A stretch of 17,497 nt of DNA from Lytechinus pictus (taxonomy: Eukaryota): the NCBI RefSeq assembly GCF_037042905.1. It is one part of the record NC_087257.1 of this genome. One strand, given 5' to 3'. Shown in pieces: positions 1,799 to 8,809 of this stretch. Every line of letters starts with the position of its first letter. Position 1 is the first letter of the stretch. The translations under genes were made by a program, and so were the position numbers. The notes below the pieces were generated by a model, which was not told the origin of the DNA, made no database searches, and was given only the letters and a program-made list of their open reading frames with translations.

Positions 1799-3459
1799 CA
1801 CTGTTGGTCATAAAGGTGGAATATTTTTTTTCACCAAATTTTCTCAGCGTAATTATTGCAACATGATTTGAATATGGCATTTATGGTTGCATGATAACCA
1901 CTTTACTTTATAATTCTGCCTTTTACACACGTTTGACAGTGATATTTTACAAGTTTATGTCCTAAGCGATGGATGTCATGAGCATAGAACAACACTGACG
2001 ACAATATACAGTAAATTAAAGGATCATGAGATATTTATTTTCAATCTCTCTCAGTTTTCCAGATGACTTTTTTTGTGATTTCATGGACAAATTTGCATCA
2101 AACTTGAGTCATTGTTCTTACTCAGTCACTAGTATCGGGTATGTCCACCCCTGGCACGAACCAGCGCATGCAGACGTCGTTACATGCTGTCCACTAGCTT
2201 GTTGATGACGTAAACAGGCATAGCGTCCCATTCTTCCCTCAGAGCATTTGCCAACTCCTGCAGATTTTGAGGAATGACCTCTCTGTCGTTGATGGCTCGG
2301 CCTAGGGCATCCCATGCATGCTCTATGGGGTTCATATCCGGCGAACAAGCTGGCCATGGCAACTGTACGACGCCCTCTGCCTCCAGGAATTCCTTTACTG
2401 CAGCGGCCCTTTGCGGTCTAGCGTTGTCATCCTGCAGTCGGAAACTGTGCCCATACACTCGTCTTGCATATGGAAGACAGTGGAACTCCGAGATATCCCT
2501 GTAGGCGGCGGCGTTGACGTTTCCGTCCGGAACCACCATTGGCGTTTTCCCTCCATAATGGATGCCGGCCCATATCACCACTGAGCCGCCTCCGACTTGA
2601 GTCGTCTCGTGGATACATTCATCACAAAGGTTTTCCCCGGCTAATCGACGAACTCGTTGTCTCCCATCCTTTCGGTCAAGGATGAACCGGCTCTCGTCCG
2701 TGAAGACCACATGTTGCCAATGTCCTGGATGAAGCCTTCTGTGCTCCCTAGCCCAAAGAAGACGAGCTACTCTGAGGTGAACAGACAGGCGTGGACATTT
2801 GGTCAACCGTCGTGCTCGGTAACCATGTTGGAGCAATCTGCGATTAACGGTTGACCGGGAAACGTTGATCCCATGATATCTCCTCCACAAGCGACGGAGA
2901 TGGCTCGTGGGCAATTTCCGGTTTCTGCGGCTGAAATTCAACAGTTGGCGATCATCTCTTCTTGTGGTCAATCTGGGACGTCCTGGAGATTTCCGTGGCC
3001 GCACATTCCCCGCCTCACGTTGACGTTTCAGGATCTTAGAGACTGCACTCTGTGATATCCCTAGGACTTCTGCGGTATCAGTCTGCTTGTAGCCCTCCTG
3101 TCGCAGTGCTACCACTCTCTCGCGTGTTGCTGTTGCCGTTGGACCAGGCATAGTCCAGGGAACGTCTCTACCGATTTTTATTTCAAACGGTACAAGGAAC
3201 TCGAAAAAATGCAACCTTCTTATACACAGTGCTAAATCAGGGAAAGGGACAGAATATCATATGCATAGGCTTTTATAGTCTACAACAAAATAATTTATTA
3301 CGTAATCCAAATTTCTCATGTTATAATGTCACCTGTGTAATGGGGAAACATTATGTAATCACTCAATTACCATTTTGTCTACGCGTAGCCTTTCAAATAC
3401 CAACAAAACTGTCGATTTTTATTCAAAAATATTTTATTCCACCTTTATGACCAACAGTG
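1799..3459 (-). mobile_element. full-length Tc1-family DNA transposon (1661 bp)
   Basis: Perfect 25-bp TIRs CACTGTTGGTCATAAAGGTGGAATA (1799-1823; 3435-3459), TA TSD (1797-1798; 3460-3461), internal transposase, minus-strand AATAAA at 2034-2039. Confidence 0.97.
2129..3151 (-). pseudogene. Tc1 DD34E transposase (340 codons) with premature TAA at 2180-2182
   Basis: True ATG at 3151 (MPGPT...). Paired-like HTH, GRPR motif, FTDES...QDDNARPQ...SPDMNPIEHAW with 34 residues between the second D and E. After the TAA the frame continues RRLHALVRARGGHTRY* (TAG 2129-2131), a typical Tc1 C-terminus. Confidence 0.93.
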
Positions 3460-4350: not shown

Positions 4351-4602
4351 ATGAACCGGTTGGCAAGTCTCCTGGGCATCATTGTGACCGTCTTCGTACT
4401 CGTACCGGTACAAGGCCACATATCATTCCAGTACTGCAGGCCGAAGTGCCCAGAGTGTCCACAGGCGGGTCTTATCCCCTTGGAGGATTGGCAACTGAGA
4501 GAGATCCAGAATGCCCAGAAGAGGGTCGCCGCTCTCAAGACCAACCGCAGCATGACTTATAGCAACACCAGGCCCATTGTTTCAGGCTTTACAACCAGTC
4601 AG
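4351..4602 (+). CDS. exon 1 of secreted Spaetzle/neurotrophin-like cystine-knot precursor (signal peptide + prodomain, 84 aa)
   Basis: accATG with in-frame TAA upstream at 4318; hydrophobic signal peptide MNRLASLLGIIVTVFVLVPVQG|H; CxxxCxxC; NRS sequon; phase-0 donor CAG|GTAGGG. Confidence 0.85.
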
Positions 4603-4919
4603 GTAGGGAGTGCAATGATGCCCTTTCATAAATGCAGTCATCTGTACCGCGGTATTATTTGCCGGTTACCATACGGGTATCAGGATCTATGAATATTAAC
4701 CTACCCTTTTTCCCAAACTGCTATAAAATTATCAAGGGCTCGATCTGCACGTTCAATATAAGATATTAAGAAAACGTTGCCATGCCTCTGTCCACCGCTT
4801 GCCAACGAAGTTGTTTCACCCACATTTTACTTCGAAATATCCACTTTTATACACTAAAATGCTTCTAGGTTACCCTTATATGCAGGGGCGGAAATCTCTC
4901 CCAAAAGTTAGGGGGGACA

Positions 4920-7101
4920 CAGGGGCGGATCCAGCCTTCGCCAATAGGGGGGGGGCGGAAATTAGTTTCAGCCATATTTTCCCCGATCGGCAGCTCGAAG
5001 ATAATTTGTGTTTGTTTCTTTGAAGGAATAGTCCTCATTAGTCACTTCCTAGCTTCATTCTTATAAATTCATATATAATATAATAATCCTTATTTATATG
5101 ATGCGAGCGCGAAGCGCGAGCTAATTTTTTGGATTTTTTTCCCCCCTAAAATTTTAACATTCTGGGCAATGTTTGTTATCCTAAAAAAATGTGTATGCAA
5201 CTTAATAATTACTACAAACGCAAAGCGCGAGCAGAAATGAACTGATGGAAAAGATACCTGTTAAAGACTACGTGCAGTTAGCGTTTAACAATCAAATATT
5301 GCGAGCGCGAAGCGCGAGCTGATTTTTTTTGACATTTTCACCTAAAGAATGGAAATTCTAAGCACTTTTTGTAACTCAAGCAGAATAGGTATATAAGTAG
5401 ACAGTTGATGCGAGCGCAAAGCGCGGGCGGAAAATTTCGAGATTTAGTCCTATAATATTTACTGAACGAGACACTCTATTCATGTTTTGTAAATCATGAA
5501 AAGGATGAGTATTAATAATGCGAGCGCAAAGCGCGAGCAGAAAATTTTTATATACGTTTTGAACAGGTACCTGTTAATGACTGCTTGAACTTAGCCATGA
5601 AGGCGTTACATATTTCAACAATTAAAAAAATGCGAGCGCGAGCTGAAAAATTTAGAAAATTTCTAAAGAAAGAATGAAAAATTTTAATCAATTTTTGTAA
5701 TCGTGAACTGGATAGCTATATAATTCAACAATTGATGCGAGCGCGAAGCGCGAGCAGAAAAAAAATATCGAGATTTAGACCTAAAAATGGGCCACTCTGT
5801 TCATGTTTTGTAAACAGCCATAGGCTGATCGAGGGCTTTTTACCGTGTTTAAATAAAATAAATCAATCAAAATCAATGTTTTGTAAATCATGAAAAGGAT
5901 GAGTAATAGGGGGTCTTCCTACATTAATAATGCGAGCACAAAGCGCGAGCAGAAAAATTTTGATATTGTGATCTGAAACTGGATACTGATTTAAATAGAG
6001 AACAAGTTGAGTATTTGAATAAACATGCGCGCGCGTGTTTCATATTTAGACCTAGAATCTAGGCATTCTAAATACATCTTAAATCATGAAAATCATGAAA
6101 CTTTGATATTCCGATCTGAAAAATAAGTCAATTAAAGCTTTATATTTCAAGCACTTTGTAGGAAAATTGTAAGGTGGATATGGATCGCACTTAAAAAAAA
6201 GAGCTAAAATTTTCATTATTATTATATTTGAGTTTTGACATAGGACCGGGACATCCTTACGACATGTCATGAAAATGATGACTATCTTCCTATTCCTCTT
6301 GCTAAGTGCGAGATGAAACAAAAGGGACAATTTAATTATTAGATTAATATCATATTTATTAATGCTTGCAGGGCGCGAAATCTGATGATATTATGGCATA
6401 AAAACTGGACATTTCACTATTGTAATTATGAATAGAATGAATCAGTTAATGTATTTTTAACCATTAATGCGAGCGCAAATCGCGAGCTAAAATTTTTGAT
6501 AACTGTCATGAAAAGGGAATTTTAAGTAGTTTGTTGTATAATCAATATTGAAACATACATAACTTGCCAATCAAAATGCCAGCGTGCAGCGCTAGCTGAT
6601 ACGTCTTGACAATCAGACCCGAAAAGGGAAATTTTGAAAACTTTATGAAATACACGAAAATAATAGGTACCTGATAAATAAAAATGTGTGAGCACGCAGC
6701 GCAAGCAGCAAATGTTGATATAATTATTCAGACCATAAAACTGACATTTTTACAGAACACTTTTTAAAAATCAATTCGTAGATCACACAAAATAATGAAA
6801 GTTCGATTTCCGAGGTGAAATATGTTTTGTATATTGACTTCCAAACTTGATATCTGAGCTCCATAGATATGTAAATCACCTAACAGGCAATGCGAGCGTA
6901 AATTTTATATAGTGGCACGAAAGATTATTTTTATTTTCCAAGTCTTCCCCTCATCTTATTTTATGCACTCGTCGTCCTTCTCTTCTTTTTCTCCTTTCTT
7001 TTCCCTCCTTTTTTCCTTTTTCATTCTTTCTTTCCCTATTTTTCTTTTTTTTGTTCCGCCAATAGGGGGGGGGGGGCTCGGCTCCCCTGGATCCGCCTAT
7101 G
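4920..7101 (+). mobile_element. non-autonomous TIR element with internal ~110-bp tandem array of TGCGAGCGCGAAGCGCGAGC units (copy 1)
   Basis: TIR CAGGGGCGGATCCAG / reverse complement CATAGGCGGATCCAG; GGGACA on both flanks; motif starts at about 5102, 5213, 5300, 5409, 5519, 5631, 5736, 5931, with decayed copies to about 6900. Confidence 0.8.
5815..5875 (+). mobile_element. severely 5'-truncated non-LTR retroposon 3' end
   Basis: 61-bp insert ending AATAAAATAAATCAATCAAAATCA, flanked by a perfect 12-bp duplication ATGTTTTGTAAA (5803-5814; 5876-5887). The sister repeat unit near 5482 lacks it. Confidence 0.75.
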
Positions 7102-7500
7102 GGGACAAGGGGCGGGAAAATTTGACAAGCAAAAAAAAAGGTTATCATCCCAAAAGTACGGTCCCAACTCTCGTCACGTCCCAAGTCTCGTCCCAACTCG
7201 TCCCAAAATACATGTTTTATTACGATTTAGAATGATATATTTCTTACCATGAAAGACAAAAAATAGTAGGGGGGACATTTGATATTGTGTCCCCCCTATT
7301 ATTTTGAGTAGGGGGGACACGTCCCCCCTGTCCCCCCTGGGATTTCCGCCCATGCTAACATGCATGAATTAAACTCACCCGTTATGCTTTTACGAGGTTA
7401 AAAAAAAATTCTGGAGTGCGAAAATACAGATTTGCAGATAATACTTATATTTTTTATGTTATATTTATATGTAATTTTATCTTTGATTATTTTCTAACAG

Positions 7501-7716
7501 AAGGAACAAATGAGGGAATTATTCGGCCAATACTTCAGCAGAGACAAAACATCAGTTGACGAAGACTTCATGTTGTTTGACGAAACTAACCCAAGTAGTC
7601 GACGGCGAAAGCGCGACCCCGATGATCACCTGACTCGGGTCTGTCCGGTTATCCGAACTCCGAATGTTCTTGTGACAGTCTATGATGCGGATGGCAACGT
7701 CTTACAAGTGATTCAG
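7501..7716 (+). CDS. exon 2 of Spaetzle/neurotrophin-like precursor (72 aa, contains furin site)
   Basis: Acceptor ttttctaacAG at 7500 and donor CAG|GTGAGC; phase 0/0; open frame KEQMRELFG...RRRKR|DPDDHLTRVCP...LQVIQ. Confidence 0.88.
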
Positions 7717-8262
7717 GTGAGCTTTCAGATTTCAGTTTTCCATACAATAATGCAAATTGAAAGGAAACAATATGTAAATATCATAGTTGATATAGTTTGA
7801 AGTTTATGTAGAATATCTTCCTAAAACATTTCAATAAATTAAATAACAGTGTACTAAAAAATGTTTAGGCATAGCCATATAACAGTTAATAAAGCCTTTT
7901 CTCTGTATTTGTTTTTCATCATAAGCATAGTTTGGTAGTAGGGTCGTCGATCAATGTTTTAGATGGGGGGGGGGGGTGAAAAAGAAAAATTCCGTAATTG
8001 TCAGTGCGCTCTGCGCACGAAATTATCATAGGCCCTACCGAACTTTGCGCCGTCAAGTTAACACTTGCGTTTATGTCATGTTAAATTATTGCATATAAAT
8101 TTCCACTGCATTTTGAGACATATATTTGCATATATAGGCCTATTCGTGTCAGTTTTGGTAATGCTATACCGTCAGACAAGACATGATTACTCGATGATTA
8201 GAAGACCATTTTTTTAGTCTCCGTTAAAAGAAAAACATGTTATTTTTCTTGATGTATCTCAG

Positions 8263-8463
8263 GCCAATGGTCATACACAACCGATGTTCCGTGAGATTTG
8301 TGCAAGCCCTCTCTCACCGCATACAATCGATGCTTCATGTATGTCGGCTGTACGGTTTGCTTACATGGTGGGCTTCCACGTTGACTTGAACAACCAACCA
8401 ACGCATATCCAAGCTTATCGTATTCAGATCGAGTCCTGTACCTCGGTCATGTCAACGGGATGA
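8263..8463 (+). CDS. exon 3 (terminal) of Spaetzle/neurotrophin-like precursor (66 aa + stop)
   Basis: Acceptor ...gtatctcAG at 8262; phase 0 gives ANGHTQPMFREICASPLSPHTIDASCMSAVRFAYMVGFHVDLNNQPTHIQAYRIQIESCTSVMSTG*; TGA at 8461-8463; AATAAA shortly downstream. Confidence 0.88.
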   Translation, partial: ANGHTQPMFREICASPLSPHTIDASCMSAVRFAYMVGFHVDLNNQPTHIQAYRIQIESCTSVMSTG

Positions 8464-8504
8464 CCAAGGTTTACATAAGAAATATGGACCAGACACAAAA
8501 TATG

Positions 8505-8534
8505 AATAAAGTCCGACAGGCAGTGAAAAATAAA
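8505..8534 (+). terminator. two polyadenylation signals (AATAAA 8505-8510 and 8529-8534)
   Basis: Canonical hexamers just after the stop codon, followed by T-rich sequence. Confidence 0.6.
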
Positions 8535-8544
8535 CAATTAACAT

Positions 8545-8621
8545 ATTTATTTATTTATCAATTACTTAATTAATTAATTTATTTATCTATTTATTTAATT
8601 ATTTATTCATTTATTTATTTA
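8545..8621 (+). repeat. (ATTT)n degenerate microsatellite / ATTTA cluster
   Basis: Many overlapping ATTTA pentamers. Confidence 0.85.
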
Positions 8622-8680
8622 TCAAGACCTACATTATTTCGCTAGGATCAGGATCACTTTCATCCTGGTCTTGATATTGC

Positions 8681-8809
8681 NNNNNNNNNNNNNNNNNNNN
8701 NNNNNNNNNNNNNNNNNNNNNNNNNNNNNNNNNNNNNNNNNNNNNNNNNNNNNNNNNNNNNNNNNNNNNNNNNNNNNNNNNNNNNNNNNNNNNNNNNNNN
8801 NNNNNNNNN
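8681..8809. other. assembly gap (129 N)
   Basis: Run of N. Confidence 1.

Follow-up and report, generated by a model that had tools for sequence, protein, structure and literature searches.

A four-cysteine family of candidate NGF/Spaetzle-type secreted ligands in camarodont sea urchins

Gene A, a spliced and transcribed gene of the sea urchin Lytechinus pictus, probably encodes a secreted, furin-cut ligand of the NGF/Spaetzle type that is held together by two disulfides (I-IV and II-V) and likely functions as a non-covalent dimer. The defining feature of NGF- and Spaetzle-type ligands is a cystine knot of three disulfides, in which the III-VI bond closes the knot ring. The mature domain of gene A carries four cysteines and has a serine where Cys VI is expected, an arrangement that recurs in all ten members of a small gene family in three urchin species.

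The window, i.e. the whole stretch of 17,497 nucleotides analysed here, corresponds to C13:23994001-24011497 of the chromosome-scale L. pictus contig C13 (812-Mb assembly). Gene A lies on the + strand and comprises three exons (4351-4602, 7501-7716 and 8263-8463) with GT..AG introns and all junctions in phase 0. Its product of 222 amino acids is letter-for-letter identical to NCBI XP_063965052.1, annotated as 'uncharacterized protein LOC135156453' of Lytechinus pictus, and this match supports the start of the gene in exon 1. Exon 1 holds the start codon, a signal peptide (first 22 amino acids, 4351-4416) and the N-terminal prodomain with a CxxxCxxC cluster, and is followed by a GT donor at 4603. 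Exon 2, preceded by AG at 7499-7500 and followed by GT at 7717, encodes the remaining prodomain, the proprotein-convertase (furin-type) site RRRKR (7600-7614, recognized as a sequence motif) and the first 34 residues of the mature domain. This first part of the mature domain (7615-7716, DPDD...VLQVIQ) corresponds to the first predicted beta hairpin and includes the CPV motif, with the Cys I codon at 7642-7644. Exon 3, separated from exon 2 by the phase 0 intron 2 (7717-8262), encodes the second part of the mature domain with Cys II at 8299-8301, a third cysteine, read as IV, at 8338-8340 and a last one, read as V, at 8437-8439, followed by the Ser codon at the expected position of Cys VI (8443-8445) and the stop codon TGA (8461-8463).

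The stretch 7615-8463, on which the earlier note had placed the domain, is therefore not a single ORF; it consists of the end of exon 2 (102 bases), an intron of 546 bases and the terminal exon. The cysteine pattern that the note had described is nevertheless exact in the spliced 100-residue domain following RRRKR: only four cysteines are found (mature positions 10, 47, 60 and 93), in the contexts RVCP, EIC, ASCM and ESCTS and with the spacing C-36-C-12-C-32-C, and the C-terminal motif, C-x-C in cystine knots, indeed reads C-T-S. The 3' UTR extends from 8464 to at least 8523, where an RNA contig ends, and a poly(A) site is likely located near the AATAAA at 8505-8510. Just downstream of the 3' UTR a run of N, either an assembly gap or a mask, begins at 8681.

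RNA contigs from two public runs of one study cover all three exons of gene A. The exon joints lie exactly at 4602|7501 and 7716|8263, and the depth over intron 2 is zero in both runs. Exon 2 is covered by contigs of both runs with at most one mismatch, and a contig of 465 nt leads from exon 2 through exon 3 to position 8523, past the AATAAA, with a single mismatch. As the tandem paralog B matches exon 3 at only ~83-89% DNA identity, the exon 2/3 contigs can be assigned to gene A. The exon-1 contigs show letters of the paralog-B type and are thus not assignable to gene A or B. Two large RNA-seq runs from 2026 contain no reads on the exons of gene A and cover only the repeats of intron 1; expression of gene A is therefore not ubiquitous.

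Intron 1 measures 2898 bases in gene A and ~430 in paralog B, the additional 2.5 kb being repeat DNA. Within it, the region 4885-7354 accumulates RNA-seq reads at high depth, together with contigs that carry numerous internal joints (e.g. 4912->7101), which is typical of dispersed repeats and not of gene A. Upstream of the gene, the segment 1799-3459 contains an intact Tc1/mariner-type transposase of 344 amino acids (ORF 2180-3214, - strand) with HTH_Tnp_Tc3_2 and DDE_3 domains. This insertion is specific to the gene A copy, since the 1.7-kb segment is absent from the paralog-B copy. The A/B duplication itself is a mosaic: the flanks are 96-99% identical, but identity to C13:24037069-24037820 drops to 83-89% in the block 8122-8680, which comprises exon 3, the 3' UTR and the end of intron 2. 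This suggests either gene conversion of the flanks or a separate origin of the exon-3 block. Further downstream, an ORF of 200 amino acids on the + strand (13891-14493) ends in ...FENLIFEGGGNKGLAYAGAIRV, resembling the GGGxKG start of a patatin-like phospholipase domain, and may, judging from its sequence, be the first exon of a neighbouring gene.

The ten family members comprise five genes of L. pictus, three of L. variegatus and two of S. purpuratus. Paralog B (LOC135156459) is a tandem copy located 35 kb downstream of gene A, while gene C (LOC129273066) on C12 is ~30% identical to gene A and has exons 1 and 2 fused. Genes D (C13:26231749-26233708) and E (C1:40277829-40280602), found with the family profile, have two exons each. 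Of the L. variegatus genes one is A-type and two are C-type; both S. purpuratus genes are C-type. The four cysteines align in 10/10 members, and the residue two positions after the last cysteine is Ser in every one of them, giving C-T-S, C-A-S or C-S-S as the C-terminal motif. The interval between the first two cysteines is 36 throughout, the next is 12-22 and the last 31-33. The CP[VA] motif and the exon end ...VQ are likewise kept in all members, the five L. pictus genes all have an intron interrupting the domain directly after this ...VQ, and the prodomain motif TY.N..PI...FT..Q is conserved in the family.

The members differ in processing signals and in additional cysteines. Clades A and C retain an R-x-[KR]-R site at the position of RRRKR, which D and E lack. 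The latter two genes have a conserved prodomain, no dibasic site before the knot domain, and Pro/Gln-rich tails after C-T-S; their processing may therefore differ or be missing altogether. Within the domain the number of cysteines is even (four) in A, B, C and E. Gene D has one extra cysteine in the first hairpin (I-II interval), with position VI still occupied by Ser. In the L. variegatus A ortholog (P0009) three additional cysteines (STC, SIC, ASC; mature residues 54-66) bring the total to seven. They sit in the II-IV loop near the site of neurotrophin Cys III, position VI again remaining Ser, and the odd total could permit a covalent dimer in L. variegatus.

No six-cysteine member was found among those recovered. 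The pattern holds across clades that are only ~30% identical, in three species, in intact reading frames and in spliced RNA, which bears out the proposal of a distinct four-cysteine subfamily. In a phmmer search with exon 3 against 1.84 billion proteins only paralog B and P0002 matched, and word-indexed searches with the gene A protein, a clade-C exon and the family profile returned nothing beyond Lytechinus and Strongylocentrotus. P0002 was rejected as a homologue: it is the translation of a 106-bp minisatellite on an unrelated ENA metagenome contig (contig positions 8304-9564, 12 copies), called as a 'protein' of 447 amino acids, that mimics the C-terminal motif (IQAWRLQLSTCASVMS). In these searches the family was located only in camarodont sea urchins, and its gene accessions are not mentioned in the literature searched.

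We compared the family with known protein classes. Gene A gives no significant match to Pfam NGF, Spaetzle or IL17, nor to PDB sequences, whether used as a single sequence or as a profile. Pfam and PDB matches to NPC1_MLD, RHS repeat and YejM, obtained in single-exon, full-length and mature-domain searches, were discarded as noise. Pfam NGF (PF00243) shows no match at E <= 10 for gene A or any other member, and a genome scan with this profile leads to loci on C19, not to the gene A locus. Pfam IL17 (PF06083) likewise matches no member. Four clade-C members, scanned individually, align with Pfam Spaetzle (PF16077), and with no further family, at 13.1-14.7 bits, below the curated cut-off of 27; these alignments place residues 8-103 on positions 2-91 of the 96-position profile and are colinear over the full domain. 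An alignment-mode scan gives a sub-threshold Spaetzle match in 5/8 members with no other Pfam family recurring, and A, B and L. variegatus A have none. Comparison of gene A with the L. pictus neurotrophin by hhalign yields a probability of 2%, and BLASTP is likewise not significant, both being in the expected register; the non-significant hhalign register places Cys II on Cys II and the third cysteine on neurotrophin Cys IV. The protein-language-model neighbours of the gene A domain are Spaetzle (0.90), Spz/IL-17 (0.89) and NGF/Spz (0.89) clusters, with the same clusters for the C domain (Spaetzle at 0.89), and IL-17 and Noggin/Trunk-like clusters are also among the neighbours. Full-length P0013 has as its nearest neighbour a Spaetzle-carrying mollusc cluster (0.94, 209 shared features); an echinoderm cluster and NGF clusters come next.

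Structure prediction gives a related picture. AlphaFold models the gene A domain (eight sequences) with a pLDDT of 44.5 as four strands in two hairpins, and Foldseek with this model returned no usable match. A second run, whose twelve rows also comprised exon fragments of D and E, targeted the clade-C member P0012, which is ~30% identical to gene A. The resulting model (pLDDT 58, pTM 0.42) again has four strands in two hairpins (residues 12-15, 41-47, 69-82 and 93-106). In a Foldseek search of the PDB with the P0012 model, neurotrophins take the first 34 places (best E 8.9e-3, probability up to 0.99, TM 0.3-0.4), with Spaetzle and IL-17 ranking after them. VIA-align, a method independent of Foldseek, places only 25 of 48,161 chains at Z >= 2, and the 24 listed are all cystine-knot growth factors: NGF at Z 4.5 (model residues 6-108 on NGF 11-113), IL-17A at 4.4, Spaetzle, IL-25 and PTTH at 3.4 each, as well as coagulogen, noggin, Norrin and VEGF. 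An Atlas shape search ranks an echinoderm cluster first, followed by Spaetzle and NGF clusters. The scores are individually weak (E > 0.001, Z < 5, TM 0.3-0.45); it is the agreement of independent methods, together with the single superfamily among the matches listed, that supports the predicted fold. Cystine-knot homology of gene A is thereby suggested by the paralog model with a pLDDT of 58 in conjunction with the language-model neighbours. A homodimer prediction (score 0.07, the alignment not being used by the predictor) counts neither for nor against a dimer.

The models also suggest which of the six knot cysteines are kept. In the end-to-end NGF register the first cysteine falls on Cys15 (I), the last on Cys108 (V) and the conserved Ser on Cys110 (VI). 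In NGF, Cys II lies at the end of strand 2, Cys IV at the start of strand 3 and Cys V at the end of strand 4; in the P0012 model the second cysteine ends strand 2, the third opens strand 3 and the last lies at the end of strand 4. The distance between the second and third cysteines is 18-22 in clades C, D and E, and in the L. pictus neurotrophin the II-IV distance is 20 and the II-III distance 8. Because of the NGF register, the strand positions and the II-IV distance, a loss of III and VI with retention of I-IV and II-V is the most economical reading. The assignment of the cysteines as I, II, IV and V, already made in the earlier note, also fits the sub-threshold Spaetzle match, and I-IV/II-V pairing in the gene A domain is predicted accordingly from the models.

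An unlikely alternative within the same superfamily is that the protein belongs to the IL-17/Trunk/PTTH branch; it would then be a ligand of the T1C type whose partner is an IL-17 receptor or a Torso-like double-FN3 receptor instead of Toll, Trk or p75. The near tie of IL-17A with NGF in VIA-align, the scores of IL-25 and PTTH, and the IL-17 and Noggin/Trunk-like clusters among the language-model neighbours are consistent with it, as are the loss of exactly the 3/6 disulfide in invertebrate IL-17-type knots and the conservation of Trunk from cnidarians to amphioxus (PMC11087794). However, the ~15 canonical L. pictus IL-17 genes, located on C17 and C6, score above the cut-off of Pfam IL17, a profile that no family member matches, and show different motifs (CPW...C.C..C...C.C). 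The I-II spacing of 36 is near the 42 of the neurotrophin, versus ~20 in urchin IL-17s, Foldseek puts its 34 neurotrophins before any IL-17, and the sole Pfam family with sub-threshold matches is Spaetzle.

It is less probable still, and in our view quite improbable, that the gene encodes a secreted prohormone or beta-rich protein peculiar to its lineage, which is non-homologous to cystine-knot growth factors and resembles them by convergence and by a bias of the predictors towards a familiar fold. Such a protein would account for the lack of a significant sequence or profile match, for models of low confidence with structural scores below the usual thresholds, and for a family that database searches place only in camarodont urchins. 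In contrast, language-model features, sub-threshold Pfam matches and two structural aligners point to one superfamily, no unrelated fold appears among the VIA-align matches listed above Z 2, and relative to strands 2, 3 and 4 the second, third and last cysteines of the model are placed like II, IV and V of NGF.

The domain shows signs of constraint at variable rates. In clade C the mature domain is 64% identical between L. pictus and S. purpuratus, compared with 44-54% for the prodomain, and between D and E omega is 0.41 for the knot domain (dS 0.45) and 0.68 for the prodomain. In clade A the mature domain is changing faster (77% identity between L. pictus and L. variegatus, versus 87% for the prodomain), and A versus B gives a mature-domain omega of 0.63, which is not decisive given the small number of changes. 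Taken together, the sequence comparisons indicate purifying selection and yet fast evolution of the family, and purifying selection across its members excludes simple decay. The absence of III-VI is, moreover, common to a small family in three urchin species and thus represents a maintained variant. A decaying or neutrally drifting duplicate of a six-cysteine ligand that has lost its function is accordingly highly improbable: the fast evolution, the A/B omega, the divergence of the exon-3 region relative to its flanks and the 2026 runs lacking exon reads would suit it, but nothing disrupts the ORF, the splice sites or the furin site, two samples contain spliced RNA, and the four-cysteine pattern is kept in ten genes of three species and across distant clades, with no six-cysteine member found. 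The suggestion that the paired loss reflects selection on a folded protein agrees with the conserved pattern and with dN/dS < 1 in both comparisons, as the proposed alignment of orthologs and paralogs brought out. Of the overall interpretation given in the earlier note, the subfamily and the selection hold, and the fold and the disulfide pairing stand as model-based predictions.

If gene A encodes an NGF/Spaetzle-type ligand, the signal peptide would direct the proprotein into the secretory pathway, where a furin-type convertase would cut after RRRKR and release the 100-residue C-terminal domain. The released domain would adopt the two-hairpin fold of the NGF/Spaetzle type of cystine-knot cytokine, presumably held by the I-IV and II-V disulfides, with the ring-closing III-VI bond absent family-wide and position VI always Ser. 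As the number of cysteines is even, a non-covalent dimer is most likely, and in this form the ligand is predicted to act on a cell-surface receptor, which may be Toll-like or of the Trk or p75NTR type.

Sea urchins have hundreds of Toll-like receptors, and a profile scan of the L. pictus genome found no canonical Spaetzle gene; the Spaetzle-like family therefore offers concrete candidate ligands. A far-reaching extension, which we consider rather doubtful, is that camarodont urchins possess a private, fast-evolving and 'unknotted' Spaetzle/neurotrophin-like family, with at least five genes in L. pictus, that provides endogenous protein ligands for a subset of the greatly expanded TLR set or for Trk/p75NTR. 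If true, deuterostomes would thereby gain their first example of a Spaetzle-Toll-type ligand-receptor system, and the NGF fold would work without the ring-closing III-VI disulfide. A conserved, expressed family that has the hallmarks of the fold and consistently lacks the III-VI bond would amount to a natural test of how much of the knot is required for the domain to fold, dimerise and bind its receptor; L. pictus, moreover, lends itself to genetics.

The neurotrophins (PF00243; Sp-NT and Sp-NT2 in urchin) likewise consist of a signal peptide, a prodomain, a furin site and a C-terminal domain of ~100-115 amino acids. NGF, NT-3 and BDNF are the best structural matches of the predicted two-hairpin fold, with Cys I, II, IV and V colinear, and short motifs of the family echo those of neurotrophins (QW..E..C; AVY.VAIR versus AWVYAMIR). 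Neurotrophins dimerise non-covalently, as predicted here for gene A. In contrast to them, gene A is without Cys III, Cys VI and the terminal C-x-C, has Ser at position VI and no Pfam NGF match, and its mature domain is split by an intron. Compared with the L. pictus neurotrophin, the I-II hairpin of the family is six residues shorter (36 versus 42) and the IV-V interval four longer. A different gene, on C19, encodes the canonical L. pictus neurotrophin, and a probable NT2 is also located there.

Spaetzle (PF16077) provides the nearest language-model neighbours and, alone among Pfam families, repeatedly gives colinear matches below threshold. The furin-type motif of gene A, known here from the sequence, resembles the processing of Spz2 (DNT1) and Spz5 (DNT2), whose prodomain is cleaved by a furin-like protease (PMC9427763). 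The Spaetzle dimer is covalent through an extra interchain cysteine, Cys-94 (PMC9427763), whereas the urchin family has neither the C-x-C nor, except in L. variegatus A and in D, a spare interchain cysteine.

Among invertebrate IL-17-type knots, the types T1A (all bonds), T1B (2/5 lost), T1C (3/6 lost), T2 (1/4 lost) and T3 have been distinguished (PMC11087794). Unlike IL-17, the urchin family shows no IL17 Pfam signal and has a long first hairpin and a prodomain predicted to be cleaved by furin; the canonical urchin IL-17s differ in the first cysteine interval and in their motifs and lie in separate clusters. Vertebrate IL-17 (T2) lacks 1/4 (PMC11087794), in agreement with the statement in the earlier note that IL-17s lack the I-IV bond, while the family described here probably lacks 3/6. 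The cysteine pattern of the family is like that of T1C, in which Cys 3/6 are lost and two knot disulfides are maintained (Chen et al. 2024, PMC11087794). As this paired loss has been published for an IL-17-type knot, the open-knot pattern is less unprecedented than had been implied. The family is best described as a new, four-cysteine form of NGF/Spaetzle-type secreted ligand that joins the two-disulfide cystine-knot cytokines already described as T1C and T2.
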